Positions 1-35,500 of a stretch of 64,000 bases of DNA are shown here, in pieces; position 1 is the stretch's first letter, and each line of letters begins with the position of its first letter. The DNA comes from Haliotis rubra. Lineage: Eukaryota. Below the pieces are notes generated by a model, which was not told the origin of the DNA, did not search any database, and worked only from the letters and a program-made list of their open reading frames with translations. The position numbers and the translations under genes were made by a program. The stretch covers positions 1-64,000 of the forward strand of contig NW_025766114.1 in assembly GCF_003918875.1 (NCBI RefSeq), written 5' to 3'.

Positions 1-35
1 TTGTTGTAGCGCTGGTGCTGGTTGCGTATTGCTCT

Positions 36-1305
36 CAGCATATACAAAAGTACTAGAATCTGTGCTTTACTGATAAAGTGTAATGTCAAACATAACATAT
101 GTTGCATGTGATCACTTTCTAGAAGGAATTGTTCATATCTACGCCAAAACGTCGCACTCGTTGTAATAAAGAAGCCGCCATATAGCTGGAATATTGCTGA
201 GGAGCGGCGTAAAACTAAACTCGCTCACTGTAATAAAGAAGCTGCATCAATGAGTACTGTGTCTTTGTTCATCGTACCAAATTTCAAGTCAATTTTGAAA
301 ATCATAAACAGGAGACAAAGTACACTGATGTGTGTCCGTAATCTCTCTCCCAAAAGAAACGCATCATGAAAATAGCAATTTCATGTAGCAATATGAATTA
401 AAACGTGATTCATTTTAAAAGGTTTTGCTCTGTTTATGAGTCCTATGGTGTTTATGTTTTGAAACATCACAAAAAAACACCATCCATAAAATACCCGTAT
501 TTATAACAGCATGATTTTCAATTTCGGCGTGTCGTGTCACAAAATACACAATTCACGTGCAATGTACGTGAAGATAGTGGGGATCAGATAGTCTCAATGA
601 TGGGTGATCGCTGTCTGTCGATTATTCACTGTATTTGGAATATTGTTGACGAACGCAAAATACAACGTCTAAGTGAAACCAACCGTCATATCGCCATTGG
701 TTTGCTTGAAGCTGGCCAGTCTCAACGTGCAGTTGCCCGACGCATGGATGTTCACTAAACACCATTTCACGGCTCTGGGAGAAGATATCGCCGGCAGAAT
801 GCGGTAGCAGATACCCCTCGTAGTCAGGGCGACCTCGAGCGACCACTGCGGCGCAGGATCGCTACATCCGGGTACATCACCTGCGTCATCGAAGACAGCT
901 GGCGACTAGTACCGCTCGACAAATGCAGATTGATTGAGGCTGAACAGACCGTCAGGAACAGGTTGAGAGAGGCTGGTTTACGTGCCAGCAGACCTTATTT
1001 TGGCCTGTGCTTCGACAACAACATCGTCGACATCGAGTTCAATGGTGCACCAACGTTCCAGGCCTTGAACCTACCGAATTGGCGTAAGATCTGGTTCAGT
1101 GATGAATCACGATTTCTGTGGAACGACGCGATGGAAGAGATGCGGGTGTACAGACGTCGACGTGAACGTTTCGCCGACGCTTGCGTTCCCCAGGTAAACA
1201 GATTCGGCCGGGAGGTGTTATGATGTAGGGGAGCGATCACCTGCCGTATGGGAAGTGATTTGGTGATGATCCAGGGCAGCCCGACAGCTCAATGGTACTG
1301 TGACG
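36..1305 (+). repeat. Direct-repeat copy 1 of the segment at 62717..64000 (SINE relics plus 5' part of a Tc1 element)
   Basis: Colinear match over ~1.27 kb, including ~300 bp of non-Tc1 flank with the same nested SINE fragment. This copy carries many small indels. Confidence 0.9.
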
Positions 1306-8250: not shown

Positions 8251-9401
8251 TATTTGGCTATGTGTGTTTGAATAACTGAACACCTGACAACTACAGCATG
8301 CTGCTCTTCAGCATCTGAACATCGTGTGAAAAAAGTAACCCGTGTTGCAACTCCAGATGCGCTTTTCTAAAGGAATGGAACGCATTTGAATTGCCTGCGG
8401 GGAACTCTAATGCAAGAAGTCAACTTCTGGTGTCAGCACATGTTCCCGTGCGTTTCCGGGTAAACAATTGATTTTCCTTTGGGTTTTACTCAATAATAGA
8501 AAGGGATTTGTTATTTCCATACATCCACCCGAAACTCACTTTGTTGAGTAACTGTTGTATACATATATTTGTGAACTATGTTTTTAAAAAAGCAATACCT
8601 TGTTCCGAAATTTCATTTGTAACATCTGACGTATATGACAGATGTAACATCATATGTTAACTTGATCGGGCGATTACGATAAGGGATACTACATTCGGAT
8701 AAGGATAACTGTCATCCTACATTCATCTGGGAATAACTCACTGTAATACATTTTTCAATATGACTGATCAGGCTGGAGCCAACATGCATTTACGAAATTT
8801 TACTTGATTATTGTTCAGTCTGTTCATAATTTTGTTTAACCAATCAGTCGTTTTGGGGTTTCATGTGCGTGTTTGTTACTCAGTTCTTAATAAGACTAAT
8901 TTAGTTCGGCTAACTCGGCTAATCCGTGATCATGTTGTGTGTTCACATTACTTGGGTTGAAGTTGGGAAAGACCGACATCCTGCAAACAGACAAAAGAGA
9001 GTTAAACATCAACTGTAATACCCATAAGTATGCATTTAATCGCGTAATATATATGTAATAAGTAATTTTACAACAGTTTAATAGTGCTGAATATCCGTAT
9101 TTAGAGGAATCTGCTAACACTTCTAATCCACTTGTCTGTCTGTGTGGACACTGCCTCACACTATCTGTGTTACATGCTCTTGTAGTGAGCCTTTGGTTGC
9201 CATGAGGACATCATTTTATTTCTCCCGAATAATATTACAGATATACCACATTAAACCAAATATAAACAGATCAAGCTAACTTTACAACCAAGTAAAATAT
9301 TAACTGAAATATAGTATTGAAAACTTTCAGCATGTAAAGACAATCTAATTGCATACTTCAAGGCACATTTAGATAACACGCAGTAGGAGTTCATGGGTTA
9401 G

Positions 9402-9683
9402 AGTGAGTGAGTGAGTTAAAATTTATAGTCACATCGGCAATATTTCAGCTCATGAGTAAGATGAACAGGACATGACAACATGATAACCATAATAAAATAC
9501 CAAGGAAACACACATATGGCAATTGAGAAAAATATATCTCATGTTATATGGGGTTAAACTTTGCCAGGAAACTACAAATTCTATTACTTCTTTTGGTTTG
9601 AGTTCCTTCCGGGATTCGAACCGACACTCTCGGAGCAAGGCACGTCGATAGCAGTCTAACCCACTAAGCCACGGAGGGTTCCA
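9402..9683 (-). mobile_element. tRNA-derived SINE with (ACTC)n tail; duplicate at ~33790..34076
   Basis: On the minus strand, A-box (tggcttagtggg) and B-box (ggttcgaatccc) motifs and a LINE-like tail ending in ctcactcactc. Confidence 0.65.
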
Positions 9684-10599
9684 TCAAATGGAAGTCAGAC
9701 AACTGGTAACCGTCTTCTTTTGTGTCCTTCTGACAAGTGTAAATTATCACAGCTCCCAAGGCGGAAGTTTTGAAGACAGTTTTTAGAAAGTAATCAAATG
9801 GAACACGTGTTATATTTGTGGTAACACTTTCTTAGTAAAGTACAGATTGTAGTACCTTTGTGGATGAACAGAATTGTTGTTTGGCATAATGAAAATATGA
9901 ATCAATTCTTGACTTTTCGTAAAACAAATCCGAAGAGCACGCCAGTCTAACAGAAGAAACCATGTTAGGAATAATGACGAAAATCTAATTTAGGTTCTCT
10001 TAAATGGATTGCATTAAGACCGATCAGTATTCTGCTGGGAAGTATCTGCCGACATAACAACCCCAGAGAAATAGTCAACCTTATCGGGCAGAGCTCATCA
10101 TCATCATCATCCAAAGGAGCGGTCATTGCACCTTTGTGATTCCTGAACCAATTCATTTCAGCCATTTTACCTCTTGACTTGTGCTCATTTTTTATATTTT
10201 GAGGTCGAGGTACCGCTGATTGAGTACCTGTGCTCTTCTTATCATATGTGTCGAGTCCTCTTCAACGGCAGTCAGGTCCAAACACACCATGTGCTGTGGA
10301 GACGGAAAAAGACATCAAAATAACATACAACGCACAAAATGGGTGTTACAAAATGTTACAAAAGAATGCTTACTATCTTGAAAAATAGAATCCAGGTCTT
10401 CAGCGTGACGAGGGAACGCTTCAACCACTGGGTTACCCCCTGCCGTCTAATGCATTTGGAGGAAATGATGGTGTACCTTTTGGTGACAATACATTTATAT
10501 CTAACTGGTGAATTGTATTCGTAGACACAAGTTGCAAAGCTTAATCAGTAACATTAGTTAACTATGAAAACTTTAATTATACTAAACCTTTCACAAGGA

Positions 10600-11573
10600 A
10601 AACTGTAAAACACTACCAACAAAACAACACCTTGTAATATATTGTTTTCAACATATTATAATTTTCATATATTTCTTACAAAACAATGTAGTGAGCAAGT
10701 TTTAGCATTTATCGCCACTTTTAACAGAATTCCAATTATACCACCGCGTTTCAGCTGAATATGGGAGGGAAAACAATAGATTCATGTCTCAGACCTTTAC
10801 TCTTTCCGTTAAACCAAGCATCGATGTTCCACCTATGAAATATCTAGAAAACATACATGCAACGAGTCAACAATCACAGATTTCTGATGTACCTAATGAT
10901 CGCAGCTATGCAAAGCGAAACTTGGTGCAGAAGACGTCGGGGCAGCCCAAGCTGTAACATGAAACAATTTATCACCCTATGACCAAGTGACAACAATAAG
11001 CACTTTTTCTGCCAGTACAATTAAACCTTGATGGTATTTGCCGAATAACTCTGCTACACAATCAGTGATTAAAACACTGATGGCAGCTGATCATGTTAAT
11101 ATCATTTAGGGTGTGTTCTCATATGTTCTGCATTTCCCATTAGTCATGATTCCTGGAAATGGTTTTGTACAGGTTAAATTGACATGAGTACCCAACGCCA
11201 TTGCCAGCTTTCATCAATGCTACTGTAAATGACAATGGTGACGTAACATACCCTCAAATCAATATTCAAAGCATTGGGAGATGGGATTCATAATGACAGG
11301 AACACTTAGCGGTATGTTTTTATTCAAGTGTAACATAAACAAGGACAAAAGATCGATACAGGCGTAATGTAGGAGCGCGACATCAAATTGACCAAGCTTT
11401 TCAGTTGTTGATTGTGTAAGCACTACCGATAATGTCTAAAAGGTTTCTCCTGGCCACGAACATTTTTACCAATCCATGAATCATTTCGAAAATCCAGTCT
11501 CCGCGTGTGGCTGAATTCACTGGGGTTGTGCTGTTTATCCTTCATCATTAGTGACGCTGACACACGTTTGAAA
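10600..11573 (+). promoter_or_regulatory. Conserved upstream/5' UTR block of A- and C-type receptor genes
   Basis: Homologous blocks precede R3, R5, R7 and R8 (ctacacaatcagtga; aagct(t/g)ttcagttg; aaaggtttctcc; tgaatcatttc; gtctcc(a/g)cgtgtg). Function is inferred only from position and conservation. Confidence 0.45.
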
Positions 11574-12761
11574 ATGTTTGACCTCTGCAGATGCGTCCTT
11601 ATAGTTTACCTCTGTCCCTTAGCTTTGGGCTCTGTTTCCTACAAGGAGAAAGATTTCCTGGCCAACCTCACCTCGGACTACGACCCCAAGATCCGCCCGG
11701 TGTTAGATGGTTCCAACACGACAGTGAGTATTAGTATGGGGTTGTACTCAATATATTCTCTGGATGAAAAACAGGAAGTGCTCATCTTTAAAGCATGGGT
11801 CTATATGACGTGGAAGGACCAGCTTCTGGTGTGGAACACGACAGATGGCATTCCCGTTGTTGTAACTATGTCACTGGCGGATGTATGGACACCAACCGTA
11901 CTGAATGTTGATTCTGTGACGAATATGAGGTACCTAAAAGATGAAACAGATACAGTGGTTGTCTTTCAGGATGGTACAGTTATATATTCCTACATAGGTA
12001 GGTTTGATACAGGATGCAAGGTCAATATCCAACAGTTTCCTTTCGATCGCCAGACATGTTATTTTCACTTGGAAACATTTTATCCTCCTGCAAGTAAGGA
12101 ACATCTCAAGGTAGTCAACTCGTATGTAAATCTGGAAACATACAAAGAAAACGGAGAATTTCACCTTCTCAGTGCATCAATGACACAGGAGAAATTCACT
12201 CTTCTCAATGTAACTCTTGAATGGATAGAAGTGACCCTTGTCCTGCAAAGACGAACCACCTTCTACATCCTCAACAACATCCTACCCATCGTGTTCCTTT
12301 CCTTTCTTAACATCTTTGTCTTCCTGTTGCCCGAGGAGAGTGGTGAGAAGGTGTCCCTGTGTGTCTCCATCCTATTGTCATATGCCATGTTTCTCAATCT
12401 CATCAACTCCTACCTACCAGCGAACTCCGACCACCTGTGTTTCTTCAGTGTCTACGTCACCCTGCTTGTGTTGATCAGCACACTCACATGTCTCGTCACG
12501 ATCTTCATGCAGTTACTTCACACAAATCTCCAAAGGGAAAATGTCAGTCCAAGATGGCTGCCAATCGCATGGAGATCAGCCAGCAAAGTTGGAATAACCA
12601 AACTACAAGTTAAGACTGATGATGTCTCTCCAAACAAATCGAACGTGAAAGACAATAAGAAAGATGCACTACTCGCCAAGTGCAACAGAGTGGCATTTGG
12701 AACGTTCTTCATCATCACAGCTCTCACTAACCTTATGTTTTTCATTAGCGTATCCCTATGA
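11574..12761 (+). CDS. R1: intronless divergent Cys-loop ligand-gated ion channel subunit (nAChR-like, non-alpha), subtype A, ~395 aa
   Basis: ATG at 11574 begins a signal peptide. Contains YDPKIRPV, LDEK, WKD..L.W, Cys-loop CKVNIQQFPFDRQTC (C-x13-C), pre-M1 RR, four TM helices, and M2 GEKVSLCVSILLSYAMFL. No loop C vicinal cysteines. Confidence 0.95.
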   Translation: MFDLCRCVLIVYLCPLALGSVSYKEKDFLANLTSDYDPKIRPVLDGSNTTVSISMGLYSIYSLDEKQEVLIFKAWVYMTWKDQLLVWNTTDGIPVVVTMSLADVWTPTVLNVDSVTNMRYLKDETDTVVVFQDGTVIYSYIGRFDTGCKVNIQQFPFDRQTCYFHLETFYPPASKEHLKVVNSYVNLETYKENGEFHLLSASMTQEKFTLLNVTLEWIEVTLVLQRRTTFYILNNILPIVFLSFLNIFVFLLPEESGEKVSLCVSILLSYAMFLNLINSYLPANSDHLCFFSVYVTLLVLISTLTCLVTIFMQLLHTNLQRENVSPRWLPIAWRSASKVGITKLQVKTDDVSPNKSNVKDNKKDALLAKCNRVAFGTFFIITALTNLMFFISVSL

Positions 12762-13213
12762 CGGTATTACGCATTACTGCCACTGCTTGTTTCACCTGGA
12801 ATACATGTTTTTGGTCAGTAGATTTGTTTAGTGACATTTTCTATGTGTTTTCACGCACCATTGACAATTATGATGTGTGATGCAATTCTCTACCTGTCAC
12901 TCACAGCACGTTCCCATGCTTTGTTGGATGAACAATTAACTTCAGAATTGAAAGGGATTTGTTATTATCTTTCCTTGCCTCACTTTAGTGAAATTTCATA
13001 TATTTTTTGTGAACTACTTTTTGTTATCGCCAGTGCATTGTCCCATTTTATGACCTATCATTTGTAACATTTAACGTATGTATCTTGACCTGACGACTGC
13101 AGTGATATCGTTTGTAACACCTGATTAGCAATTAGCAGTCCACTGTTTATCAACCTTGTCAATTGTATTTACTCACTATGCAACTATGTATATATTTCCT
13201 TGTTACAACTCTT

Positions 13214-13567
13214 GGACCGCCTCCGTGGTGTAGTGGTTAGAGCGTCCGCCCGGAGAGCGGAAGGTTGCGGGTTCTATCCCCGACCGCGTCATACCAAAGA
13301 CGTTAAAATACGGTACTTGTTGGTCCCTGCCTGGCGCTCGGCATTAATGGGTACAACAAGGACTGGTCGGCTCGGAGTCAGTATAATGTGTCTGAGTGGG
13401 GTATTCATTCTTCACTGCGGCGTGGTATCCCAGTTGGCTAGCACTTTAAAACCAGCTTAAGTCTGAGCTAGTACAAGCAGCCGCAGACACACATACACAC
13501 GCATGCACGTCGTCATATGAGCGAAATATTCTCAAGCACGACGTTAAACCTAATTTCACCTCACCTC
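13214..13567 (+). mobile_element. Full-length tRNA-derived SINE with a core resembling the MetaSINE/MESC domain
   Basis: A/B boxes (tggtgtagtggtta; gggttctatccc), core ataccaaagacgttaaaa...cctgcctggcgctcggcattaa, a cacct-repeat tail, and imperfect TSD tgttac(a/t)actctt. The superfamily call is from memory. Confidence 0.75.
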
Positions 13568-13731
13568 TTCTGTTACTACTCTTAGTATCACTTGCTGTAT
13601 AACGGTGATAGTACCTACACCGAAACGTCGCACTCGCTGCAATAAAGAAGTTGACTATCCATAGAACTTGGTTTTCCTTCACCTATACAACTTCTAAAAA
13701 TGCCTCTCAAAGAAGTTCACCATCTCTCTAG

Positions 13732-13732
<1 letters not shown>

Positions 13733-13796
<64 letters not shown>
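13733..13796. repeat. (CT)n microsatellite
   Basis: About 30 CT units. Confidence 0.98.
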
Positions 13797-13798
<2 letters not shown>

Positions 13799-16470
13799 AC
13801 ATGATTGCTGCTGCTGATAACGCGGCACTCAACCAATCTGCGACACCACTTCTCATCCCCGACACAGACTATAAATCAGTCATGAGAAGTTACATCCATG
13901 ATCTAAAGAAATGGGACACCCAAGTGGTGTAAATAAGTAAATTAAAATTAAACCAACTGTTGATTACACCTAATTGGACTGTCAATCCAGATTTGAAGAG
14001 TTCATTATACGACGATGTCACTGACAACTATAGCATAGTATGGTTCAGTTATACAGCATCTGATCTGAATGGTGTATTCACACCAGATGCCTGTTCTCAA
14101 CGGAAGCATTGTGTCATTAGTTTCACCTGCAGCCAACTCTTATGCAAGAGAAGTCCATATTTGGTGCCAGCTGGTAAGGTTTAGGCTGAAAATTAGTGTT
14201 AAATCTAATCAACTCACTTACTATGTATGATGCCTCTTAATATAGTTATTGTCTAAATGGTATAACCAATGATCACAATACAGCGATAGGATACTACCAT
14301 CAGTTTATCAAACAGATAACATTATGAAATGAAAGAAAGGAAAGGATTTGAACAAATAATTATTTATTTGTATCACAGTATATTCCAACTCAAGTTACGT
14401 CCGTAATGTTTACAATCGCCATACTGGATTTTCTGTGGCAATTTTCTTTTAACAAACAGCGTCGGGTTCCAGGGTTTACTCACAGTTGAATTCTATTTTT
14501 CGAATTTCGAGAGATGTTTGTGGTAATACTATCTCTGCTGTCTAAGTACCTAAGTAAGTAATTGTTAGAAAAACTATGTTGCCATAAGGATGACTTGTAA
14601 CTGTCGTTTATTCATGTGTGATTCATTCCGACTGAGTATTCCAAGATCGAAATGATTTCAATTCAGTTACAGTTATAACACGCCCCTTGTTTGGCCGTAA
14701 AATACGATAGTTCACAGTCGGGGGTGACAGTGGAGGTGAGGTTGGGGAGTTTTTGGCGGAGGCATATGAGGGGTTTCCTACCTGTTATGTGTACATTCTA
14801 ATGTGGTCCTCAGAGTTACCGTTTCTGAGAATCACCAAGAACAGACACATTTGAAGAATGACGACCTACACATATTGCAAACTTACAAATAAAGTATGAA
14901 ATCACCTTGTGTATTCAAATCTAGAATGTCCTAAAATGTTCACAAATACAGATTCAATCGTTATATCAAATATTTTAAACAGAAGTGATCGCTGAATATT
15001 CTGAAACTTGTACACCAACTGTTCAACATGAACAAACGCTTTTAAGCTTATATAACATTTAATACTTTACCATGGAAGCCTTTCTTCAATATGGCAGAAT
15101 AAAAACAGTGTTTTAGTCTGTTGGGTTTTCCGTTATCTAAATATAACCGATAATACTTATAGTATAAACAGTGTTGTATACATAATTTATCAACCGTTCT
15201 TCTCATACAACTTGAGCCTTATACTTCATCAAAATCACTTGACTACGAAACCAGTGAATACAACTCATGATATTGGTATAGAATCATGCAAATAACAATA
15301 TAACATGCCGTCTCTTTCTCTCCTTCGGAATATCATGTTTGTCATTGTCCGATTACACATCGTTAGTAGAAGTAATTTCAATGTAGACAATGCCAAAATT
15401 CATTACTTCTTTAGGAGAAGTAGTTTCGTAAGCGTTAAATGTCCAGTAATTCTCAACAACAATGCCAACCTTCAAGAATTCAGTGATGGTGTGACATAGC
15501 ACACTAAGGTCAATATTCAAAGCTTCTTCAAATATTTTCCAAACATCAATTAGGACCAGCCGGGAAGGGTCTTCTTAGTCAGGTTTTACACAGTCTGTTC
15601 GAAACATCAACATTGTCATGGCAATTAGTGTTAACGATGCAACATCAAATTGAGAGAGCTACTCAGATGACCATGGATCACAGAAATACAACTAATGATC
15701 AAACGGGCATTGCTTTGCTCGTTGCTGTTGGAGACTAATAATATATTTAAAACGCTTTGAATCATTCCTAAGACTGAATCTCCTTTGCGCTGAGACTGTG
15801 CTACGTTATTTCCTGTGCTCTGCACTGAGACTGTGCTACGTTGTTTCGTGTGCTCTGCACTGAGGCTGTGCTTGTTTGGATATGTATGCCATGCATAGAA
15901 GTATCTTCATCCTTCCTTTATAGCTTCATCAAATATTTTCCAAACATCAATTAGAACCAGCCGGGAAGGTTCTTCTTTGTCATGTTTTACACAGTCTGTT
16001 CTAAAACATCTCTTTCTCTCCTTCAGGATATCATATGTTTTTCATATCTCCGATTATAATTCATTAGTGGAAGTAGTTTCAATGTAGACAGTGCCAAAAT
16101 TCATTACTTCTTTAGGAAATCTCAATAAGGTATGATACTCATGTCAATATTCATAGTTTGTTCCATACACCAATTAGGACAAGCCTGGAAGCTTCTTATC
16201 ATTTGTGTCTTACCCATGCAATCTCCAAACATCGGCATTGTAATGTCAATTAACGCTAATGACGCAACATCATATTGATAGAGCTATTCAGTTGTTCATA
16301 TTGTACAGAAATTCAGATAATGACCAAACGGGTCTTGCTTTGCCCCGTTGCTCCTGGATACCAATATAATACCTATATAATGCCTTGAATCATTTCTAAA
16401 ACTGAATCTCCTTAGCACTGAGGCCGCTGTGTGTTTTCTCCAACATTAATCACGTGAATATTGTTTGGAC

Positions 16471-17673
16471 ATGTTTGCCATACACAGATGTGTCTCCATG
16501 TTACTTCTCTGTCACGTCACTCTGGGCTCTGTTTCCTACAAGGAGAAAGATTTCCTTGCGAACCTAACCTGGAACTATGACCCCAAGATCCGCCCGGTGT
16601 TAGATGGCTCCAACACCACAGTGAGTATCGGTATGATATTGCACTCAATTATATCTCTGGATGAAAAACAAGAAGTGCTCAGCTTTAAAGCATGTGTTGT
16701 AATGACATGGAAGGACCAGCTTTTGGTGTGGAACTCGACAAGTGACATTCCCACTGCAGTTACTATGCCCCTATCGGACATGTGGTCGCCAACCATACTG
16801 AATGTTGATTCTGTGACAAACTTGAAGTACCTAAAAGATGACAGGGATACCGTGCTCGTCCATCAGGATGGCACAGTTGTGTATACTTTCACAAGTAGGT
16901 TTGACACAGAATGCAAAGTAAATATCCACCAATTTCCTTTCGATCGCCAGACATGTAATTTTCACTTGGAAACATTTTATGCCCGTGTTAGTAAGGAATT
17001 TCTTAAGGTAATCGACTCGTATGTAAATCTGGAAACATATCAGGAAAACGGAGAATTTATCCTTCTCAGTGCATTAATGGCATTGACAAAATTCCAGATA
17101 AATGACTTCAATGGCAACTGGATAGAAGTGACCCTTGTCCTGCAAAGACGAACCACCATCTACATCCTCAACAACATCCTGCCCGTCGTGTTCCTGTCCT
17201 TTCTGAACGTCTTCGTTTTCTTAATGCCCGAGGAGAGCGATGAGAAGGTGTCTCTGTGTGTCTCCATCCTGTTGTCATATGCCATGTTCCTGACCCTCAT
17301 CAACTCCTACCTACCAGCGAACTCCGACCACCTGTGTTTCTTCAGTGTATACGTCACCCTGCTTGTGTTGATCAGCACATTCATATGTCTCGTCACAATC
17401 TTCATGTTGGTACTTCACACAAACCTTCAAAGGGGTAAAGTTAGTCCAAGATGGGTGCTTGTTGCTTGGGGAGAAGACAGCAAAGTTAGAACACCTGAAC
17501 CACGGGTTAGAACTGATGACGTCTCTTCCAACCAATCCGATGTAAAAGACACAGCAAACAAATCTGACATGAAGGATGCAATAGTCACCAAGTGCAACAG
17601 AGTGGCATTTGGAACGTTCTTCACACTCACAGTACTCATTAATCTTATATTTTTCATTTCCGTATGCCAATGA
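16471..17673 (+). CDS. R2: intronless divergent Cys-loop receptor subunit, subtype B, ~400 aa
   Basis: Signal peptide MFAIHRCVSMLLLCHVTLG, Cys-loop CKVNIHQFPFDRQTC, four TM helices. Loop D Trp is replaced by Cys; the M1-M2 linker reads PEESDEK. Confidence 0.95.
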   Translation: MFAIHRCVSMLLLCHVTLGSVSYKEKDFLANLTWNYDPKIRPVLDGSNTTVSIGMILHSIISLDEKQEVLSFKACVVMTWKDQLLVWNSTSDIPTAVTMPLSDMWSPTILNVDSVTNLKYLKDDRDTVLVHQDGTVVYTFTSRFDTECKVNIHQFPFDRQTCNFHLETFYARVSKEFLKVIDSYVNLETYQENGEFILLSALMALTKFQINDFNGNWIEVTLVLQRRTTIYILNNILPVVFLSFLNVFVFLMPEESDEKVSLCVSILLSYAMFLTLINSYLPANSDHLCFFSVYVTLLVLISTFICLVTIFMLVLHTNLQRGKVSPRWVLVAWGEDSKVRTPEPRVRTDDVSSNQSDVKDTANKSDMKDAIVTKCNRVAFGTFFTLTVLINLIFFISVCQ

Positions 17674-18088
17674 AGGACGACTGTCAGTGACGGACTGCCA
17701 TTGCTTATTTCACATACAGACAGAGCCAAACGAAGATGAATGCTTGATACATCAGTAGATATGCTTTTGATAAACATCATTCACTTACACGAATGAATAT
17801 GACGTGTGGGCCAAGAGTACTATCTTTTTACATCCATTACTTATGTGACTTATTGACAATCGAAGAAGAATACATTGGATTAGCCAGTAGGTATATATGT
17901 GTCATGTCTTGTGTGTGCTTTGAAACTTTGCTGTCATTGGGGAGTTTGTGAATTGTGTGTGTCAAACTTATGTTATGAGGATGTCTTTTTGTTAATTGTA
18001 AGTTCACATTAATTAACTTTTAACTATTATGGGTCACAAAAGTTTAAAGCGCTGAAGTGTGAATTTGAACTCACACCTTCTATTGAAC

Positions 18089-18122
18089 CAGAGACCATAT
18101 AATAGATAGTATATGGTCTCTG
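18089..18122. mobile_element. 34-bp hairpin micro-insertion with 7-bp TSD (copy at 25043..25076)
   Basis: attgaac-cagagaccatata atagatag tatatggtctctg-attgaac: a 13-bp perfect inverted repeat flanked by a direct repeat. Confidence 0.7.
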
Positions 18123-19297
18123 ATTGAACTTAGGCTATGTGTTTTCACTTACTCTATGTGTTAAGAGTAGGTACCTCCCTTTGATTTTTGCTTCCGGTGT
18201 CTTCGGTGGGATTCAGGAAATTCTGAGAAGATGGTGGTGTGGCATAGCTTTGGTCAGAACACTCTATAACTGTGTAATAGGTATCTAAGGGGTGGTTGCT
18301 GAGGTGTATGGAGGACGCCTTTGGATTTACACTCATCTGTCTAACGTTTCAAGACCGACTCCTCAAGAGGCCTCGTCAACAGTGAACTTTCAACAGCTGT
18401 CAACAAACTTCAATCAGTATCTCTACAAGGATCAAGACTTTGGTGACTATAGATTTTTAGTTAATATTTTAGATTTGTGACCCAATCGTATTGTATTAGA
18501 AATCTGTACTGCCATTCATTGTAACCTTGTTTATTTTTTATTCAATATATAGTTGAATATTATATGATGTGTGTTTTATTTTGCTGCTTTAAAGGGGACT
18601 CACAAGCCTTTAATCACAGTAATTACCAAAGAATCATACATTTAATTAGTCATTGGGGTGTGTGTGAATGTTGTGTGTCCATATGATGGAATAAATTTAG
18701 TGTTAACGATTGCTATTGCATGCTATTGCAGTACAATTTCCTATTGTACTGTACAATAATCTCCTCACACATCTGTCTCTCTATCCTTCTTAACAGTGTA
18801 AGAACCTAAAGTGAAACGTCGCTCTCACTGCAATAAAGAATTTGTTCATCCATATATTGTTATCCTTCCTTACTGCTCCCACTTCTAAATGCTTCTCAAA
18901 ATCGTTATGTTTTTGCCACCGTTAGTAATATTTCAGCAATGGGCTTCACACATTGTACCCATGTGGGGAATCGAACCCGGGCCTTCGACGTGACGAGCGA
19001 ACGCTTTAACCAGAAGGCTACCCTCACCGCCCCCTATAATTTTGAGATATATGATCTGAGACTTTGGACTGACAGGCGGACGGGCAGGCATACATTACTC
19101 TAACCACTAATATTATATACCTGTGAAATGGGGAGAAAGGGGTATCCCGACAGTAAGCCAGAAGCGCGAAAAGGCAAAAACAAAAGATAAAAAATACCCT
19201 ACATCTGACATATATCATGTTATACAGTAAACAGGAAGTTGCCATCCATATGTTCATCTGATATATTCACCAACTTCTAAATGCCTCTCAAGAATTA

Positions 19298-20841
19298 CAC
19301 TGGCCCAAAAAAGAAACGCATAGGTGAAATCCAGTGTTATCAGTGATGCTTTAGTAACTTAAATTACACAAAAAGTAATAATCATAGAGCAATAAAAATC
19401 CACACAGGTATTGGGACATGTGTATCCAAAAACATACAGTCATTCACAGTGGTATTGAGAGTCTCTGTTTTTGATGGCACGGTCACAAAGTCAGTATCTG
19501 GTGTGACCACCACGAGCCTCAATCACTGCTCTGCATCGCTTGGGCATAGACTGTATAAGACGTCGGATCCGCCGTTGTGGGAGTCTTCTCCACTCATCCT
19601 GCAACGCATCGACAAGCTGTTGATGTGTCTGTGGTTGCGGCTGTCGGCGTCGTACACGTTGATCCAATTGGTCCCACAAATGTTCAATTGGGTTAAGATC
19701 CGGAGATTTTGAAGGCCATGGAAGAACTGTTATGTTGTTGATGGCAAGGAAATCTGTTGTAATGCGTGCTGTATGCGGTCTTGCGTTGTCATGCTGAAAA
19801 ATTTCTCTTCTAGCGTCAATTACGGGAATAACATGACGTACCAGGATTTCATCACGATAGCGCACAGCATTCAAATTCCCTTGGACATGCACCAGCTCTG
19901 TTCTGTCATTCACAGATATGCCTGCCCACATCATTACACCTTCGGCGCCGTGTCTGTCGACCTGACGAACACACTGTCGAGCATATCTTTCATTTCGACG
20001 TCTGTAAATCCGCATCCTGCCATCGTGTCAATACAGCATAAACCGCGACTCGTCGCTGAACCTGATCCTCCTCCAGTTCAAGAGGGTCCATGGCCGAGCG
20101 TTCCTGCTCCATTGAAGACGTGCACGACGATGGTGGTGTCGCAGAACAGGTCCTGTATGTGGTCGCATTGGTCGGATTCCATGCTCTCTTAGGCGATTCC
20201 TGATGGTTTGTGCAGAGACTCGACGCAGCCCAGGAACATTGTCGGCGGTGTACGCTGCAGTGACGATCCGATTTCGCAGATGAAACACCAGGATGAAGCG
20301 GTCTTGCGCTGGGGGTGGCACCCTTGGTCTCCCACTCCTAGGACGATCTCTGGTCGAGTTGTGCTGCGTGTAACGCTGCCAGAGACGGGAAATCGTACTC
20401 TACCTCACGTTTAGATGTCTGGCAACTGATGACTGGCTTTCTCCAGCTTCCAAGTGTCCAATGGCTCTGTTTCTGCTTTCTTCGTTTAGTCGTGGCATCT
20501 TGAGGGTCGCATATACAGAATTTCGAAGAATGAATCGCAACAGGACTGCTGGCTTTTTATACCCATCAGTATCAAGATTCAGATCCCGTATTTGCACGTG
20601 CATCATGCTTTCAGATTTTACGGGGATTTTTTCATCATACTTTGCAGAGTATACGGGGATTTTTTCAAGGTGCTGTGTTTTGGCGAATAATCACCAAAGG
20701 TTGTTTTTGCGTGTGTTGGATAATTGTATGGGCTATATTCACACTTAATATAAACATTGACAGTCATTCCATGCCATATTTTTCGAAACAATCTACTTTG
20801 AAGATCAGAATTCAGCTATGCGTTTCTTTTTTGGGCCAGTG
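19298..20841 (-). mobile_element. Tc1/mariner transposon, full length (1544 bp), transposase disrupted
   Basis: Perfect 26-bp TIRs cactggcccaaaaaagaaacgcatag with TA on both sides. Transposase starts at ATG 20498 (MPRLNEESRNRAIG) and includes FSDESRF, FQHDNA, SPDLNPIEHLW and GGHTRY, with internal stops. Confidence 0.96.
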
Positions 20842-22662: not shown

Positions 22663-23868
22663 ATGTTACGAAATTGTGACCTTTTCATTTCACTCTGTCT
22701 CTGTCGCTTGACCATGGGCTCTGTTTCCTACAAAGAGAAAGATTTCCTGGCCAACCTCACTTGGAACTACGACCCCAAGATCCGCCCGGTGTTAGATGGT
22801 TCCAACACGACAGTGAGTATCAGTATGGGGTTGTACTCACTTTTATCTCTGGATGAGAAACAGGAAGTGCTCAGCTTTAAAGCATGGGTTTCAATGTTGT
22901 GGAAGGACCAGCTATTGGTGTGGAATACGACAGATGACATTCCCTTTGCAGTCACTATGCCCTTGCCGGATGTATGGACTCCAACCGTACTGAATGTTGA
23001 TTCTGTGACGAGTTTGAAGTATCTGAAAGATGAAACAGATACCGTGTTTGTCTATCAGGATGGTACAGTTGCGTATTCCTACGTAGGTAGGTTTGACACA
23101 GGATGTAAGGTGAATATTCAACAGTTTCCTTTCGATCATCAAACATGTACATTTCATTTACAAATATTGTATACCCAAGTAACCAAGGAATATCTTGAGG
23201 TAACATCCACGAATGTCGTTCTGGATGTATACAGGGAAAACGGAGAATTTAACCTTCTCAGTGCATCCATGGTGTTACAGGAGTTCACTACTCTCGGTGT
23301 TACTCAACCCTGGATTGAAGTTACATTCGTCCTAAAGAGACGAACCACCTTCTACATCCTCAACAACATCCTTCCTGTCGTGTTCCTGTCCTTTCTCAAC
23401 TGCTTCGTATTCTGTTTGCCCGGGGAGAGTGGTGAGAAGATGTCATTGTGTGTCTCCATCCTGTTGTCCTATGCCATGTTCCTGACCCTCATCAACTCCT
23501 ACCTACCAGCGAACTCCGATCACCTGTGTTTCTTCAGTGTCTACGTCACCCTGCTTGTGTTGATCAGCACACTCACATGTCTCGTCACAATCTTCATGCT
23601 GGCACTTCACACTTATTTACAAACGGGCAAAGCTTGTCCAAGATGGCTGCCGGTCGCTTGGAGGTCTGATAGCAAAGTTGGAACAAGTGAACCATGGGTT
23701 AAGAAGGAAGACATAGCTCCAAACCAATCTGATGTAAACGGTAAAGCAAACAATAAGTCGGAAATGAAGGACTTGATTATCGCCAAGTGTCACAGAGTGG
23801 CATTTGGAACGTTCTTCACACTGACACTCCTCATTAATCTTATATTTTTCATTTCCGTATCCCCGTGA
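22663..23868 (+). CDS. R3: intronless divergent Cys-loop receptor subunit, subtype C, ~401 aa
   Basis: Signal peptide from ATG 22663, Cys-loop CKVNIQQFPFDHQTC, M2 GEKMSLCVSILLSYAMFL, four TM helices, no vicinal cysteines. Confidence 0.95.
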   Translation: MLRNCDLFISLCLCRLTMGSVSYKEKDFLANLTWNYDPKIRPVLDGSNTTVSISMGLYSLLSLDEKQEVLSFKAWVSMLWKDQLLVWNTTDDIPFAVTMPLPDVWTPTVLNVDSVTSLKYLKDETDTVFVYQDGTVAYSYVGRFDTGCKVNIQQFPFDHQTCTFHLQILYTQVTKEYLEVTSTNVVLDVYRENGEFNLLSASMVLQEFTTLGVTQPWIEVTFVLKRRTTFYILNNILPVVFLSFLNCFVFCLPGESGEKMSLCVSILLSYAMFLTLINSYLPANSDHLCFFSVYVTLLVLISTLTCLVTIFMLALHTYLQTGKACPRWLPVAWRSDSKVGTSEPWVKKEDIAPNQSDVNGKANNKSEMKDLIIAKCHRVAFGTFFTLTLLINLIFFISVSP

Positions 23869-24356: not shown

Positions 24357-24649
24357 TTCACATGTCTCGTCACAATCTTCATGTTGGTACTTCACACAAA
24401 CCTTCAAAGGGGTAAGGTTAGTCCAAGATGGGTGCTTGTTGCTTGGGGAGAACACAGCAAAGTTAGAACACCTGAACCACGTGTTAGAACTGATGACGTC
24501 TCTTCCAACCAATCCGATGTAAAAGACTCAGCAAACAAGTCTGACATGAAGGATGCAATAATCACCAAGTCAACAGAGTGGCATTTGGAACGTTCTTCAC
24601 ACTCACAGTACTCATTAATCTTACATTTTTCATTTCCGTATGCCAATGA
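24357..24649 (+). pseudogene. 3' fragment (end of M3 to M4) of a B-type receptor, copied from R2 with its downstream flank
   Basis: Near-identical to 17380..17673, with a 1-bp deletion before M4. The flank continues to match 17674..18787 up to 25552. Confidence 0.9.
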
Positions 24650-25555
24650 AGGTCGACTGTCAGTGACGGACTGTCATTGCTTATTTCACATACAGACAGA
24701 GCCAAACGAAGATGAATGCTTGATACATCAGTAGATATGCTTTTGATAAACATCATTTACTTACACGAATGAATATGACGTGTGTGGGCCAAAAGTATGT
24801 GACTTATTGCCAATCGAAGAAGAATACATTGGATTAGCCAGTAGGTATATATGTGTCATGTGTTGTGTGTGCTTTGAAACTTTGCTTTCATTGGGGAGTT
24901 TGTGAATTGTGTGTGTCAAACTTATGTTATGAGGATGTGTTCTTGTTAATTGTGAGTTCACATTAATTAACTTTTAGCTATTATGGGTCACAAAAGTTTA
25001 AAGCGCTGAAGTGTGAATTTGAACTCACACCTTCTATTGAACCAGAGACCATATAATAGATAGTATATGGTCTCTGATTGAACTTAGGCTATGTGTTTTC
25101 ACTTACTCTATGTGTTAAGAGTAGGTACCTCCCTTTGATTTTTGTTTCCGGTGTCTTCGGTGGGGTCAACAAACTTCAATCAGTATATCTACAAGGATCA
25201 AGACTTTGGTGACTATAGATTTTTAGTTAATATTTTAGATTTGTGACCCAATCATATTGTATTAGCAATCTGTACTGCCATTCATTGTAACCGTGTTTAG
25301 TTTTTATTCAATATATAGTTGAATATTATATGATGTGTGTTTTATTTTGCTGCTTTTAAGGGGACTCACAAGCCTTTAATCACAGTAATTACCAAAGAAT
25401 CATACATTTGTTTAGACATTGGGGTGTGTGTGAATGTTGTATGTCAAACGGATGGAATAAATTTAGTGTTAACGATTGCTATTGCATGCTATTGCAGTCC
25501 CATTTCCTATTGTACTGTACAATAATCTCCTCACACATCTGTCTCTCTATCCGTA

Positions 25556-26518
25556 TGGAAGGACCAGCTTTTGGTGTGGAACACAACGAATGACATTCCC
25601 GTTGTTGTAACTATGCCCTTGGCGGATGTATGGTCTCTAACCGTAATAACTGTTGATTCTGTGACGAATATGAGGTACCTAAAAGATGAAACGGACATGG
25701 TGCTTATCTATCAGGATGGTACAGTTACATATACCTACATAGGTAGGTTTGACACAGGATGCAAGGTCAATATCCAACAGTTTCCTTTCGATCGTCAGAC
25801 ATGTAATCTTCACTTTGACACATTTTATGCTCCTGCAAGTAAGGAATATCTGAACGTAGTCGACTCGTATGTAAATCTGGAAACATATCAGGAAAACGGA
25901 GAATTTCACCTTCTCGGTGCATCAATCACACGGCAGAAATACACCCTTCTCAATGAATCTCATAACTGGATAGAAGTGACCCTTGTCCTGCAGAGACGAA
26001 CCACCTTCTACATCCTCAACAACATCCTTCCTGTCGTGTTCCTGTCCTTTCTTAACATCTTCGTTTTTCTGTTGCCCGAGGAGAGTGGTGAGAAGGTGTC
26101 TCTGTGTGTCTCCATCCTGTTGTCATATGCCATGTTCCTGACCCTCATCAACTCCTACCTACCAGCTAACTCCGATCACCTGTGTTTCTTCAGTGTCTAC
26201 GTCACCCTGCTTGTGTTGATCAGCACACTCACATGTCTCGTCACAATCTTCATGCAAATTCTTCACACAAATATTCAAAGGGTCAAGGCCAGACCAAGAT
26301 GGCTTCCAAACGCATGGAGATCAGAAAACAAAGTTGGAACAACCAAACTACAGACTGATGATGTCTCTCCAAACAAATCGGACGTGAAAGACAAAGCAAA
26401 TAAGAAGTCAGAAATGAAGGATGCTATAATCACCAAGTACAACAGAGTGGCATTTGGAACGTTCTTCACACTCACAGCTCTCATTAACCTTATTTATTTC
26501 ATTAGCGTATCTCAATGA
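25556..26518 (+). pseudogene. R4: 5'-truncated Cys-loop receptor, subtype A-like, otherwise open frame
   Basis: Starts abruptly at WKDQLLVWN, fused to the duplicated R2 flank. It lacks the signal peptide and ~60 residues of the extracellular domain; the Cys-loop and four TM helices are intact. Confidence 0.88.
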
Positions 26519-28487: not shown

Positions 28488-30033
28488 AACTAGTGTCCAA
28501 AAGAAACGATACCACGTGTTGCAAAGATCACTAAATTAAAACAAAACAACATAGACATTTCAAATTGATATCTTTCATTAGATAAATGATTTTATGGCAT
28601 GTGTACAAAAAGTCATGGCAATCAAAGATTTACAATCATTAACACAGGGCTTTAAACGACGTGTGGTGCCAAAAATTGAAATTTCATTTTAGCACAGTGG
28701 AGGAGGCGAGTGAGGGTAGTCTCTGAAAACAGTCTTACTGCCACTTTTGTACCGGGTATGTCCACCAGCAGCTGCGATACATGCCATGACACGCCACCGA
28801 GCTGATGACGTCAAACGTCGGATGACGTTAGGGGTGATTCGCTGCCACTCATCCTGGAGACAATGTTCCAATTGTTGCAGGTTGGCTGGGGGCGCAGGGC
28901 GTTTTCTGATTTTCCGATTGAGGTGATCCCATATGTGCTCAATGGGATTCACATTCGGTGAACTCGCTGGCCATAGCAAAACCTGTAAGTTGGCGTTGGC
29001 AAGGAAGTTCTGGGTCAATCTTGCCGTATGAGGCCTAACGTTATCGTGCTGGAACACGATTCCTCCTGGATGCTGTTGGGCGAATGGCTGCACGACTGGT
29101 CGTAAAACCTCATCATGGTAACGCTGTGCATTCAAGTTCCCCCGAATAATGACGAGCCTCCTTTTCACATCACCGCAGATATCTCCCCACACCATTACAC
29201 CTCCGCCTTCAAATGCATGGACTTGCTGGATGCAGTTCGGCGCCAAACGTTCACGAACTCTTCGGTATACTCGCTGCCGACCATCGTTCTTGTAAAGGCA
29301 AAACCGGCTTCCGTCCGAAAACAAGACACGTGCCCAGTTTCGACGTTGCCACAGCCGAACGCGCCTGGCCCATATTAATCGGTTGACTCTGTTTTGACGT
29401 GTCAGGTAGACTACGCGGTAGGGGCGACGTGCACGGATACCATATGCCTGCAGTCTCCTGTAGACGGTTTGTCGACTGATCCGGTGTCCCAGTCCCGTCG
29501 CCGCCGTTAACGTCGCAGGAACGAAGCGGTTACGTAGGTGAAGTAACCGGATGTGGTTGTCTTGAATAGGCGTGGTCACCCGGGGTCTCCCGCTTCTCGG
29601 CCTGTCTGTTGTTTGGCCTGTTTGACGCAACCGTCGCATTAACCTGGTAACGGTTATGCGCGCGCATCCAAACGTTCTTGCTACAGCGCCGTGTGATGCT
29701 CCTCCCTGTCGGACCATTCCAACGGCTCTTTCTCTCTCGATCGCTGTCAACGTGCCATTTCTTTTGTGTGCTTTTTACTGCTGTGGGCACAACGCGTCGG
29801 ACCAGCAGTTTTATACAGTTCATCTGCTCGTGCATTTTGTGCTACACGACTTAACGTCATTTTGAGTATTCGTGCGATTGCTTCTTAAGTGAATACATGT
29901 TACCGGTTTTTTCGATCGAATACGTTTGGTTAGGAACGTGGGATACACAGAAATATTTTTTTTCTCCAAAAAGTATCATTAATTTAAAAATATTGAAAAA
30001 AATATTTGGTATCGTTTCTTTTGGACATGAGTT
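28488..30033 (-). mobile_element. Tc1/mariner transposon with nearly intact transposase
   Basis: TIRs aact(ag/ca)tgtccaaaagaaacgatacca. A 353-aa ORF carries HTH, FSDGSRF, FQHDNV, SPNVNPIEHIW and GGHTRY. The ATG at 29758 is out of frame by 1 nt. The element is absent at the paralogous site (~7750). Confidence 0.95.
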
Positions 30034-31263: not shown

Positions 31264-32560
31264 TGGTTATTGTTTACGTGTTATAATTAAGTAATATAAT
31301 ACAGTGATAGTTAGCAAGTTAGGCATATATTCTAGCCTGCAGTCTGTGAAATATGGAAAAAAACAGTGTGAAAAGGTACACACCATCATTTTAACAGCAT
31401 ACACAATTGACAGAGTTGATTACAGTATGCAACACCATATCGTCTTTAAGCATCTAGCATTAACGGTAGTTCCCCAACTCCTTATAGACAAGTTGTCCAG
31501 ATTCACGACCATGAATGTACATACATCATGCTCAGCTGTTAGACTGACTGACTGAGTTTGGTTTTACGCCGCTTTTAGCAATATTCCAGCAACATCACGG
31601 CGGGGACACTAGAAATGGGCTTTACACATTGTACCCATGTGGGTATTCGAACCTGGGTCTTCGGCGTGACGAGCCAACGCTTTAACCACTGGGCTACCCC
31701 ACCGCCCCGTTTATACTATAAGTATTATCGGTTATATTTAGATAACGGAAAACCCACCAGACTAAAACACTGTTTTTATTCTGCCATATTGAAGAAAGGC
31801 TTAATGTTAAGTAGTTTCGTAAGGTTTAAATGTTAAGTAGTTTCGTAAGGTTTAAATGTTAAGTAGTTTCGTAAGGTTTAAATGTTTAGTAGTTTCGTAA
31901 GGTTTTTTGTTTACGTGGTTATTGTTTACGTGTTATAATTAAGTAATATAATACAGTGATAGTTAGCAAGTTAGGCATATATTCTAGCCTGCAGTCTGTG
32001 AAATATGGAAAAAAACAGTGTGAAAAGGTACACACCATCATTTTAACAGCATACACAATTGACAGAGTTGATTACAGTATGCAACACCATATCGTCTTTA
32101 AGCATCTAGCATTAACGGTAGTTCCCCAACTCCTTATAGACAAGTTGTCCAGATTCACGACCATGAATGTACATACATCATGCTCAGCTGTTAGACTGAC
32201 TGACTGAGTTTGGTTTTACGCCGCTTTTAGCAATATTCCAGCAACATCACGGCGGGGACACTAGAAATGGGCTTCACACATTGTACCCATGTGGGTATTC
32301 GAACCTGGGTCTTCGGCGTGACGAGCCAACGCTTTAACCACTGGGCTACCCCACCGCCCCGTTTATACTATAAGTATTATCGGTTATATTTAGATAACGG
32401 AAAACCCACCAGACTAAAACACTGTTTTTATTCTGCCATATTGAAGAAAGGTTAATGTTAAGTAGTTTCGTAAGGTTTAAATGTTAAGTAGTTTCGTAAG
32501 GTTTAAATGTTAAGTAGTTTCGTAAGGTTTAAATGTTTAGTAGTTTCGTAAGGTTTAAAT
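31264..32560 (+). repeat. Near-perfect 652-bp tandem duplication, each unit containing a minus-strand tRNA SINE and a 26-bp minisatellite
   Basis: Identical ORFs at 31304 and 31956 (offset 652). The 26-bp unit aatgttaagtagtttcgtaaggttta occurs ~4 times at 31803 and ~5 times at 32454. Confidence 0.93.
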
Positions 32561-35500
32561 GTTTAGTAGTTTCGTAAGGTTTAAATGTTAAGTAGTTCTC
32601 AACAACAATGCCAACCTTCATTATTTTAATGATGGTGTTACACAGCACACAAAAGTCAATATTCAAAGCTTCATCAAATATTTTCCAAATATCAATTAGG
32701 ACCAGCCGGGAAGGTTCCTCTTATTCATAGACGTGTTACAACTGTCAGATTCCACATTATGAGTGCCAGTAGTTTCATAACATTCGTGACGCGTCAGTGA
32801 CAACTGTAATGCGTGAAGAAATCTTTACTCACAGCACATGTTCCCGTGCGTTTCCGGTAAACAATTGATTTTCCTTTGGGTTTTACTCAATAAAAGAAAG
32901 GGATTTGTTATTTCCATACATCCACCCGAAACTCACTTTGTTGAGTAACTGTTGTATACATATTTTTGTGAACTATGTTTTAAAAAAAGCAATACCTTGT
33001 TCCGAAATTTCATTTGTAACATCTGACGTATATGACAGATGTAACATCATATGTTAACTTGATCGGGCGATTACGGTAAAGAATACTACATTCGGATAAG
33101 GATTACTGTCATCCTACATTCATCTGGGAATAACTCACTGTAATACATTTTTCAATATGACTGATCAGGATGGAGCCAACATGCATTTACGAAATTCCAT
33201 TTGAATATTGTTCAGTCTGTTCATAATTTTGTTTAACCAATCAGTCGTTTTGGGTTTTCATGTGCGTGTTTGTTACTCAGTTCTTAATATGACTAATTTA
33301 GTTAACTCGGCTAATCCGTGATCATGTTGTGTGTTCACATTACTTGGGTTGAAGTTGGGAAAGACCGACATCCTGCAAACAGACAAAAGAGAGTTAAACA
33401 TCAACTGTAATACCCATAAGTATGCATTTAATCGTGTAATATATATGTAATAAGTAATTTTACAACAGTCTAATAGTGCTGAATATCCGCATTTAGAGGA
33501 ATCTGCTAACACTTCTAATCCACTTATCTGTCTGTGTGGACACTGCCTCACACTATCTGTGTTACATGCTCTTGTAGTGAGCCTTTGGTTGCCATAAGGA
33601 CATCATTTATTTCTCCCAAATAATATTACAGATATATCACATTAAACTAAATAGAAACAGATCAAGCTAACTTTACAACCAGGTAAAGTATTAACTGAAA
33701 TATAATATTGAAATCTTTGAGCATGTAAAGACAATCTAATTGCATACTTCAAGGCACATTTAGATAACATGCAGTGGGAGTTCATGAGTTAGAGTGAGTG
33801 AGTGAGTTAAAATTTATAGTCACATCGGCAATATTTCAGCTCATGAGTTAGATGAACAGGACATATGACAACATGATAAGCACAATAAAATACCAAGGAA
33901 ACACATATATGGCAATTGAGAAATATATATCTCATGTTATATGGGGTTACACTTTACCAGGAAACTACAGATTCTATTACTTCTTTTGGTTTGAGTTCCT
34001 TCCGGGATTCGAGCCCACACGCTCGGAGCAAGGCACGTCGATAGCAGTCTAACCCACTAAGCCACGGCGGTTTCCATCAAATGGAAGTCAGACAACTGGT
34101 ATTCGTCTTCTTTTGTGTCCTTCTGACAAGTGTAAATTATCACAGCTCCCAAGGCGGAAGTGTTGAAGACACAATGTCTTTTAGAAAGTAGTCAAATGGA
34201 ACACGTGTTATATTTGTGGTAACACTTTCTTAGTAAAGTACAGATTGTTGTACCTTTGTGGATGAACAGAATTGTTGTTTGGCATAATGAAAATATGAAT
34301 CAATTCTTGACTTTTCGTAAAACAAATCCGAAGAGCACGCCAGTCTAACAGAAGAAACAATGTTAGGAATAATGACGAAAATCTAATTTAGGTTCTTAAA
34401 TGGATTGCATTGAGACTGATCAGTATTCTGCTGGGAAGTATCTGCAGACATAACAACCCCAGAGAAACAGTCAACCTTATCGGGCAGAGCTCATCATCAT
34501 TATCATCCAAAGGAGCGGTCATTACACCTTTGTTATTCCTGAACCAATTCATTTTAGCCATTTTACCTCTTGACTTGTGCTCATTATTTATATTTTGAGG
34601 TCGAGGTACCGCTGATTGAGTACCTGTACTCTTCTTATCATATGTGTCGAGTCCTCTTCAACAACAGTCAGGTCCAAACGCACCACGTGCTGTGGAGACG
34701 GAAAAAGACATCAAAATAACATACAACGCACAAAATGGGTGTTACAAAATGTTATAAAAGAATGCTTACTATCTTCAAAAATAGAATCTAGGTCTTCAGC
34801 GTGACGAGGGAACGCTTCAACCACTGGGTTACCCCCTGCCGCCTAATGCATTTGGAGGAAATGATGGTGTACCTTTTGGTGACAATACATTTATATCTAA
34901 CTGGTGAATTGCATTCGTAGACACAAGTTGCAAAGCTTAATCAGTAACATTAGTTAACTATGAAAACTTTAATTATACTAAACCTTTCACAAGGAAAACT
35001 GTAAAACACTACCAACAAAACAACACCTTGTAATATATTGTTTTCAGCATTTTATCCTTTTCATATATTTCTTACAAAACAATATAGTGAGCAAGTTTAA
35101 GCATTTATCGCCACTTTTAACAGTATTCCAATTATACCACCGCGTTTCAGCTGAATATGGGAGGGGAAAACAATAGATTCATGTCTCAGACCTTTACTCT
35201 TTCCGTTAAACCAAGCATCGATGTTCCACCTATGAAATATCTAGAAAACATACATGCAACGAGTCAACAATCACAGATTTCTGATGTACCTAATGATCGC
35301 AGCTATGCAAAGAGAAAATTGGTGCGGAAGACGTCTGGGCAGCCCAAGCTGTAACATGAAACAACATATCACCCTATGACCAAGTGACAACAATAAGCAC
35401 TTTTTCTGCCAGTACAATTAAACTTTGATGGTATTTGCCGAATAACTCTGCTACACAATCAGTGATTAAAACACTGATGGCAGCTGATCGTGTTAATAAC

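Follow-up and report, generated by a model that had tools for sequence, protein, structure and literature searches.

Region-restricted concerted evolution of the pore block in a tandem family of predicted nicotinic-like receptor genes of the abalone Haliotis rubra

Gene conversion restricted to one region of a set of related genes has been described for clustered protocadherins, for example in fugu (PMC1852091) and anole (PMC2764143), and for TLR1/TLR6 (PMC2077338). As far as the passages of those reports used here portray them, the receptor family of the blacklip abalone Haliotis rubra resembles these systems in that tandem paralogues have one coding part that is homogenised, silent sites included, and another that is diverse, and in that the converted part is closer between paralogues of the same species than between orthologues; it differs from them, on the same passages, in that it is a family of single-exon genes for a pentameric ligand-gated channel and in that the converted part is an internal patch of 150-260 nt that comprises the pore and the gating helices. 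Intronless tandem expansions of nAChR genes are known in molluscs (Jiao et al. 2019, PMC6896357), and the abalone genes are like them in forming single-exon nicotinic-like tandem arrays with pseudogenes, fragments and lineage-specific expansion. That study interprets the species-wise grouping of paralogues as post-speciation expansion, and the terms "gene conversion" and "recombination" are absent from it. Cephalopod chemotactile receptors are described, in the passages drawn on here (PMC11526382; preprint PMC13174522), as cation-channel subunits of nicotinic descent, encoded without introns, which assemble as homo- and heteropentamers and in which the ligand pocket diversifies while the channel scaffold is conserved; those passages make no mention of conversion of the pore block, and the likeness of the abalone family to what they describe is one of functional analogy. 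No report of gene conversion or concerted evolution in Cys-loop or pentameric channels was found in the limited literature that was searched, an absence that is not proof.

In H. rubra, the block that encodes M1-M3 of the receptors is probably kept alike (with a probability of about 0.8) by non-allelic homologous recombination between tandem copies, mainly in the form of short-patch gene conversion. The homogenisation has two tiers, a recent and family-wide one that covers late M2, the M2-M3 linker and M3 (~150 nt, referred to below as the core) and an older one that covers the whole of M1-M3 and extends to paralogues in which the silent sites of the extracellular domain are saturated.

The receptor copies and their identity

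The window, that is, the whole stretch of DNA that was analysed (positions 1 to 64,000 of contig NW_025766114.1, assembly GCF_003918875.1), contains eight single-exon copies of a Cys-loop receptor gene, W1 to W8, all on the + strand (Table 1); an assembly gap at 42992-43186 was left as is. Genome-wide there are about 24 copies of the receptor block, eight in the window, 14 on contig C2772 and two on contig C1760.

Table 1. Receptor copies, their parts and related segments in the window (position 1 is the first nucleotide of the window)
Feature	Position	Strand	Description
W1	11574-12761	+	subtype A, intact, 395 aa; open frame and Pfam domains
W1 pre-M1, M1, M1-M2 loop and early M2	12249-12365	+	older homogenised tier
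W1 core: late M2, M2-M3 linker and M3	12358-12509	+	recently homogenised; helices from alpha7 alignment
W2	16471-17673	+	subtype B, intact; block 17146-17406, core 17263-17406
W3	22663-23868	+	subtype C, intact; block 23338-23598
W4	25526-26518	+	subtype A relative, N-terminus truncated; block 25995-26255
W5	35968-37155	+	W1 copy, in-frame stop at 36463-36465; block 36644-36904
W6	39248-41610	+	broken chimera; block 39924-40184
W7	48186-49358	+	subtype C copy, M4 lost; block 48861-49121
W8	57740-58945	+	subtype C, intact; block 58415-58675
Orphan 3' gene fragment, W2-like	24357-25164	+	5' end inside M3 (core)
Segment with W1 and W2	8434-17420	+	duplicated as 32832-40197 (self-comparison)

From their sequence, the copies are predicted to be Cys-loop pentameric ligand-gated channels of the nicotinic-like cation type. 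W1 matches the Pfam families Neur_chan_LBD (PF02931, 8.7e-35) and Neur_chan_memb (PF02932, 5.7e-15), both above the curated cut-offs, and the closest solved structure is the human alpha7 nAChR (E 8e-39, residues 30-331), with which the Cys-loop, the pre-M2 GEK ring and M1-M3 align without gaps. The two cysteines of the Cys-loop, 13 residues apart, are present in all intact copies and align with those of the alpha7 Cys-loop, and the SGEK motif before M2, which aligns with alpha7 as well, carries the glutamate ring typical of cation-selective members. The abalone receptors differ from human alpha7 in having a very short M3-M4 loop (~60 residues, for a total length of 395 aa) and in lacking the vicinal cysteines of loop C that mark alpha-type nicotinic subunits, there being no CC in the loop C stretch aligned to alpha7 or in any copy; by this feature they fall outside the alpha type.

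Four of the window genes correspond exactly to database proteins (P0003 to W3, P0004 to W8, P0005 to W2, in which the identity begins at 16498, and P0008 to W4), and P0014, a protein named Haliotis rubra, is the C-terminal part of W7; P0012 and P0014, both named H. rubra, are 100% identical to translations of this assembly. W1 is intact, and a large protein collection that holds an identical protein for each of W2, W3, W4, W7 and W8 holds none for W1, which may be unannotated in the public record. W5 is 98.2% identical to W1, with its open frame split in two. The receptor gene was found in no public RNA run in a search of contig-level data.

Several other features were noted in the window. A 353-aa open frame with Tc1/mariner-type DDE_3 and HTH domains (28689-29750, - strand) and a 174-aa DDE_3 fragment (19491-20015, - strand) lie between receptor genes. 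A tRNA-like stretch downstream of W1 (13218-13300) is probably a tRNA-derived short repeat; it was rejected as a tRNA, ARAGORN calling none anywhere in the window. There is a direct tandem duplication of 99.7% identity (31264-31905 and 31916-32556), and a 1.3-kb repeat of 93% identity is present at both ends of the window (34-1305 and 62713-64000).

Silent-site divergence along the genes and between species

A preliminary description of this DNA had claimed that subtypes A, B and C are almost identical, third codon positions included, over the 261 nt of the M1-M3 block (12250-12510 in W1). The strings that it cited were located in W1 at 12358-12373, 12408-12455 and 12460-12499, and their span, 12358-12499, corresponds to late M2, the M2-M3 linker and M3 in the alignment with alpha7. 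The 48-nt string among them is found eight times on the + strand when one mismatch is allowed, where none is expected by chance, once in each receptor copy (W1 to W8: 12408, 17305, 23497, 26153, 36802, 40082, 49020 and 58574). Across the subtypes of the window copies, identity is 89-95% over the 261-nt block, 91-99% over the core (12358-12509), 83-93% from M1 to early M2, and 74-89% over the extracellular part common to all eight copies; at third positions, identity amounts to 0.896 for the core, 0.790 for M1 to early M2, and 0.717 for the extracellular domain. The claim thus holds for late M2 to M3, from which the strings were quoted, and fails for the M1 half: among subtypes A, B and C, clear homogenisation is limited to ~150 nt of late M2-M3, narrower than the 261 nt proposed, and from M1 to early M2 homogenisation becomes apparent only in comparison with the deeply diverged paralogues that lie outside the window. 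The divergence of the other parts of the protein was described correctly, with replacement differences (pN) of 0.31-0.54 in the signal peptide, 0.13-0.16 in the extracellular domain and 0.20-0.26 in the M3-M4 loop compared with 0.04-0.06 in M1-M3, and the phrase "constant pore joined to variable sensor" is a fair description of the genes; that such a build could favour combinatorial heteropentamers, as the preliminary description also proposed, is a conjecture.

Silent divergence was measured as the number of silent differences per silent site (pS) by Nei-Gojobori counts on a protein-guided codon alignment, with a bootstrap over codons, for the window subtypes A (W1), B (W2) and C (W3, W7, W8); pS of the core was computed on codons 12366-12509. 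Among these subtypes, pS was 0.40 [0.33-0.47] in the extracellular domain, 0.32 [0.19-0.47] from M1 to early M2 (indistinguishable from the extracellular domain), 0.13 [0.05-0.22] in the core, 0.34 after M3 and 0.62 in the M3-M4 loop, so that the core has diverged at silent sites roughly a third as much as the extracellular domain, and less than either of its flanks. In a sliding window, the lowest pS, 0.07-0.12, was found from late M2 through M3. For W1 and W2 taken alone the reduction is modest (6/34.7 silent differences in the core versus 43.7/134 in the extracellular domain). The first ~30 codons of the mature extracellular domain (11640-11730 in W1 and the same stretch elsewhere), with GC3 of 0.61-0.71, show pN of 0.02-0.04 and a somewhat reduced pS of 0.25-0.31 among the window subtypes, and pS that is not lowered versus deep paralogues; they may be a second, weaker conversion tract.

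The older tier is seen in three intact deep paralogues (L005, L007 and L018) on the sister contig C2772 of H. rubra, for which pS in the extracellular domain is saturated at 0.65-0.85 and pS in the whole of M1-M3 is 0.12-0.35 (0.14-0.46 from M1 to early M2). A blastn match between W1 and L007 or L018 is confined to the block, and M4, a membrane helix too, has pS of 0.55-0.99 in the deep pairs.

The between-species control used loci of H. cracherodii (L030, L033), H. asinina (L031) and H. rufescens (L032), the last of which carries orthologues of L007 and L018. The L018-type and L007-type genes are back-to-back in both H. rubra (C2772, 98741 on the - strand and 105483 on the + strand) and H. 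rufescens (L032, 7031-7347 on the - strand and 10001-11200 on the + strand), and a glycoside hydrolase 31 gene adjoins the pair in L032. Across species, four orthologue pairs (one of them, L003 with asi_L031b, left unresolved by the tree) gave pS of 0.34 [0.26-0.44] in the core and 0.31 [0.28-0.35] in the extracellular domain; the core distances between orthologues may be inflated by conversion from diverged donors, and they bound the neutral rate rather than measure it. The main family of H. rubra compared with H. cracherodii gave 0.35 in the core and 0.36 in the extracellular domain. Between L007 and W8, 111/138 silent sites of the extracellular domain and 1/35.7 of the core differ; between L007 and its own H. 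rufescens orthologue, the core figure is 12/35.7. W2 and W8, which are in one genome, have 2/35 silent core differences, and W2 and cra_L033a, which are in different species, have 11.5/35, the two pairs being equal in extracellular divergence. For L007, core pS is 0.03-0.11 to six paralogues (including W2, W3, W7, W8 and L005), up to 0.14-0.23 to L011, L008, W1 and L003, and 0.34 to the orthologue, compared with extracellular pS of 0.8 to paralogues and 0.42 to the orthologue, and M4 pS of 0.55-0.89 to paralogues and 0.35 to the orthologue. L018 is an exception, its core pS of 0.26-0.37 to paralogues being about that to its orthologue (0.34).

Since silent sites of the core differ normally across species, they are free to change and are homogenised inside the genome; the same normal divergence is taken to exclude both a low mutation rate and nucleotide-level constraint. 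The preference of the preliminary description for gene conversion over protein constraint alone is thereby borne out, the same silent sites differing at a normal rate across species. A locally low mutation rate in a stretch of 150 nt, for which nothing speaks beyond the low divergence within the genome, is barely credible given the cross-species divergence and the many core changes accumulated by the decayed copies L022-L024, old dead copies in which private changes make up 15-20% of the core. Selection acting directly on the nucleotides, whether through codon bias, RNA structure or an overlapping frame, could fix silent sites without exchange, and would fit the high GC3 of the M1-M3 block (0.71-0.77 in the four species sampled, with 0.73 from M1 to early M2 of W1, compared with 0.44-0.52 in the extracellular domain, 0.24-0.44 in the loop and 0.30-0.49 in M4) as well as a +2 frame that is open over M2-M3 for 58-103 codons in every copy and species. 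It is nevertheless very improbable: the same silent sites reach pS of 0.34-0.35 across species, the level of the extracellular domain, neither M4 nor the conserved Cys-loop shows the effect, and the private core changes of the dead copies tell against it too. Codon bias as the sole cause was rejected, because redrawing synonymous codons from the usage of the block itself gave an expected pS of 0.66 [0.52-0.80], well above that observed. An overlapping gene in the +2 frame was likewise rejected; its openness can be put down to a purine-poor composition, and its codons lack conservation across species, the variable silent sites being first positions of that frame.

Trees, breakpoints and mechanism

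Equal silent divergence in M1-M3 and the extracellular domain together with congruent trees of the two, the outcome that the preliminary description had named as evidence against conversion, was not what was found. In the tree of the extracellular domain, L007 and L018 each join their H. rufescens orthologues with support of 100/100, whereas the tree of M1-M3 places L007 with L005 and W3/W7/W8 with support of 85/87 (moderate, because the alignment of 261 nt is short) and with path lengths about 20 times shorter. By the AU test, the grouping of L007 with its orthologue is rejected by the M1-M3 data (p=0.031, log-likelihood difference 23.5) and the M1-M3 grouping is rejected by the extracellular data (p=1.6e-52); two further incongruence tests, on H. 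asinina copies, were marginal (p=0.07 and 0.06). The species label changes five times on the extracellular tree and twice on the M1-M3 tree. The PHI test by permutation gave p=0.001 for 11 genome copies, for eight copies of the main family and for five window copies, and p=0.004 on third positions only. A longest-run test of the GENECONV type (silent polymorphic sites, 2000 permutations) found no significant fragment in the core, as it is powerless once the whole family has been homogenised and the core is left nearly without polymorphic sites.

Individual events can be recognised in the window. Duplication of the segment with W1 and W2 gave W5 and W6 in pieces that are 95.7-97.8% identical, and its right edge lies 14 nt beyond the core of W2. 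In W6, the extracellular domain is of B type, the transmembrane block is a mosaic, a repeat follows, and the 3' end is of C type. Its block is a succession of alternating patches, each some tens of nucleotides long, of A, B and C type (in W1 coordinates, A-type at 12284-12299 and 12392-12398, C-type at 12351-12380), and W2 and W6 differ at 23/272 positions of the block versus 19/649 of the extracellular domain (Fisher p=7e-4). The repeat inserted in W6 (40198-40728, 531 bp), which breaks the frame, is a young dispersed one, for which at least 895 candidates of 96-98% identity were counted genome-wide; the C-type 3' end and flank that follow it (40729-41610) are 92.9% identical to W7. W4 and its upstream neighbour W3 are 98.7% identical in the core and only 76.9% in the extracellular part; compared with its close relative L003, W4 has 14/438 differences in the extracellular part and 9/152 in the core, and it carries the W3 state at eight of these nine core sites. 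Very recent duplicates already differ by patches with the states of other subtypes. The orphan fragment, just downstream of the intact W3, is 94.7% identical to 17380-18210 of W2 and is the remnant of a copy that lost its 5' part at the conserved core. The breakpoints of W6, of the duplication edge and of the orphan fragment all lie in or beside the core.

These same events make it conceivable that domains were shuffled by single unequal crossovers and that purifying selection did the rest, with no short conversion tracts: W6 is a chimera, the W1-W2 duplication ends at the core, and the orphan 3' fragment begins within M3. That the homogenisation as a whole arose in this way is quite improbable, however, because L007, L005 and the window subtypes all have the homogenised tract in an internal position, because the sequence after M3, the loop and M4 are diverged again and group with the orthologue, and because of the alternation of patches in W6. 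An internal tract between diverged flanks that follow the orthologue fits gene conversion and does not fit a single crossover.

Pairs of genes in H. cracherodii behave in the same manner. L033a and L033b have 3/144 differences in the core and 82/621 in the extracellular domain; L030a and L030b have 8/144 in the core, seven of them within 25 nt, versus 6/621 in the extracellular domain. The two L030 genes (1375-2586 and 10001-11203) have 21 differences in ~1300 nt, with seven packed into 25 nt of M3, and the states of this M3 patch match no sampled copy, which suggests an unsampled donor. The likeness in pattern of the H. cracherodii pairs implies that the process is not peculiar to the assembly of H. 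rubra. An error of assembly or polishing, in which reads of paralogues are piled on each copy and the consensus is homogenised, might be expected of a multi-copy block, and the independent public contigs come in pieces of ~100 nt across the gene that are unable to bridge a copy and neither confirm nor contradict single-copy cores. Such an artefact is nonetheless a shade less probable still than selection on the nucleotides, for the pattern recurs in the assemblies of H. cracherodii, H. asinina and H. rufescens, copy-specific variants survive inside the core, the ends of the tracts match domain boundaries and not read lengths, and the deep tier is a sharp blastn match in the block only, in two species.

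The case for concerted evolution restricted to one region is solid, and its mechanism is ordinary. The longest perfect run falls in M1-M3 in 51/51 pairs of copies of different subtypes, these longest runs having a median length of 50 nt and a maximum of 130 nt, a length that is attained in the core, in M1-M3, compared with 21 nt in the extracellular domain and 15 nt in the 3' part. Under short-patch gene conversion between tandem copies, constraint on the pore protein would leave long perfect matches in this stretch, the repair of DNA breaks would find a paralogous template only there, and each conversion would renew the perfect matches on which the next one depends, so that the process would feed itself. 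Conversions reaching the ligand-binding domain would either not be started or be removed by selection. The high GC3 of the block, judged from composition only, could be a footprint of long-term GC-biased conversion. The outcome is a shared pore and gating module beneath many different extracellular domains. That the M2-M3 module is in addition kept uniform by selection, so that any subunits of the array could co-assemble into pentamers with one pore, one gating linker and mixed ligand-sensing faces, is rather unlikely.

Consequences for molluscan receptor families

The abalone receptors are a clean and quantified example of a ligand-gated channel whose sensor half diversifies and whose pore and gating half evolves in concert, in a gene family whose large expansions in molluscs are under active study. 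Trees of full-length molluscan nicotinic-like proteins are weighted by the conserved membrane block and can cluster paralogues by species through conversion. Concerted evolution of the membrane block is therefore a second reason for species-wise clustering of paralogues, beside post-speciation expansion, and clustering that is driven by conversion would inflate the number of post-speciation expansions that is inferred. The core is also a birthplace of new chimeric receptors; in the window, the chimera W6, a duplication edge and an orphan fragment are all located at this stretch. Should the subunits prove to co-assemble, the module they share would account for the use of one channel by many sensor variants. 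If the shared module is indeed selected, the array would amount to a gastropod chemoreceptor system that is ionotropic and modular, in which conversion would take the role that a shared constant exon has in the clustered protocadherins.
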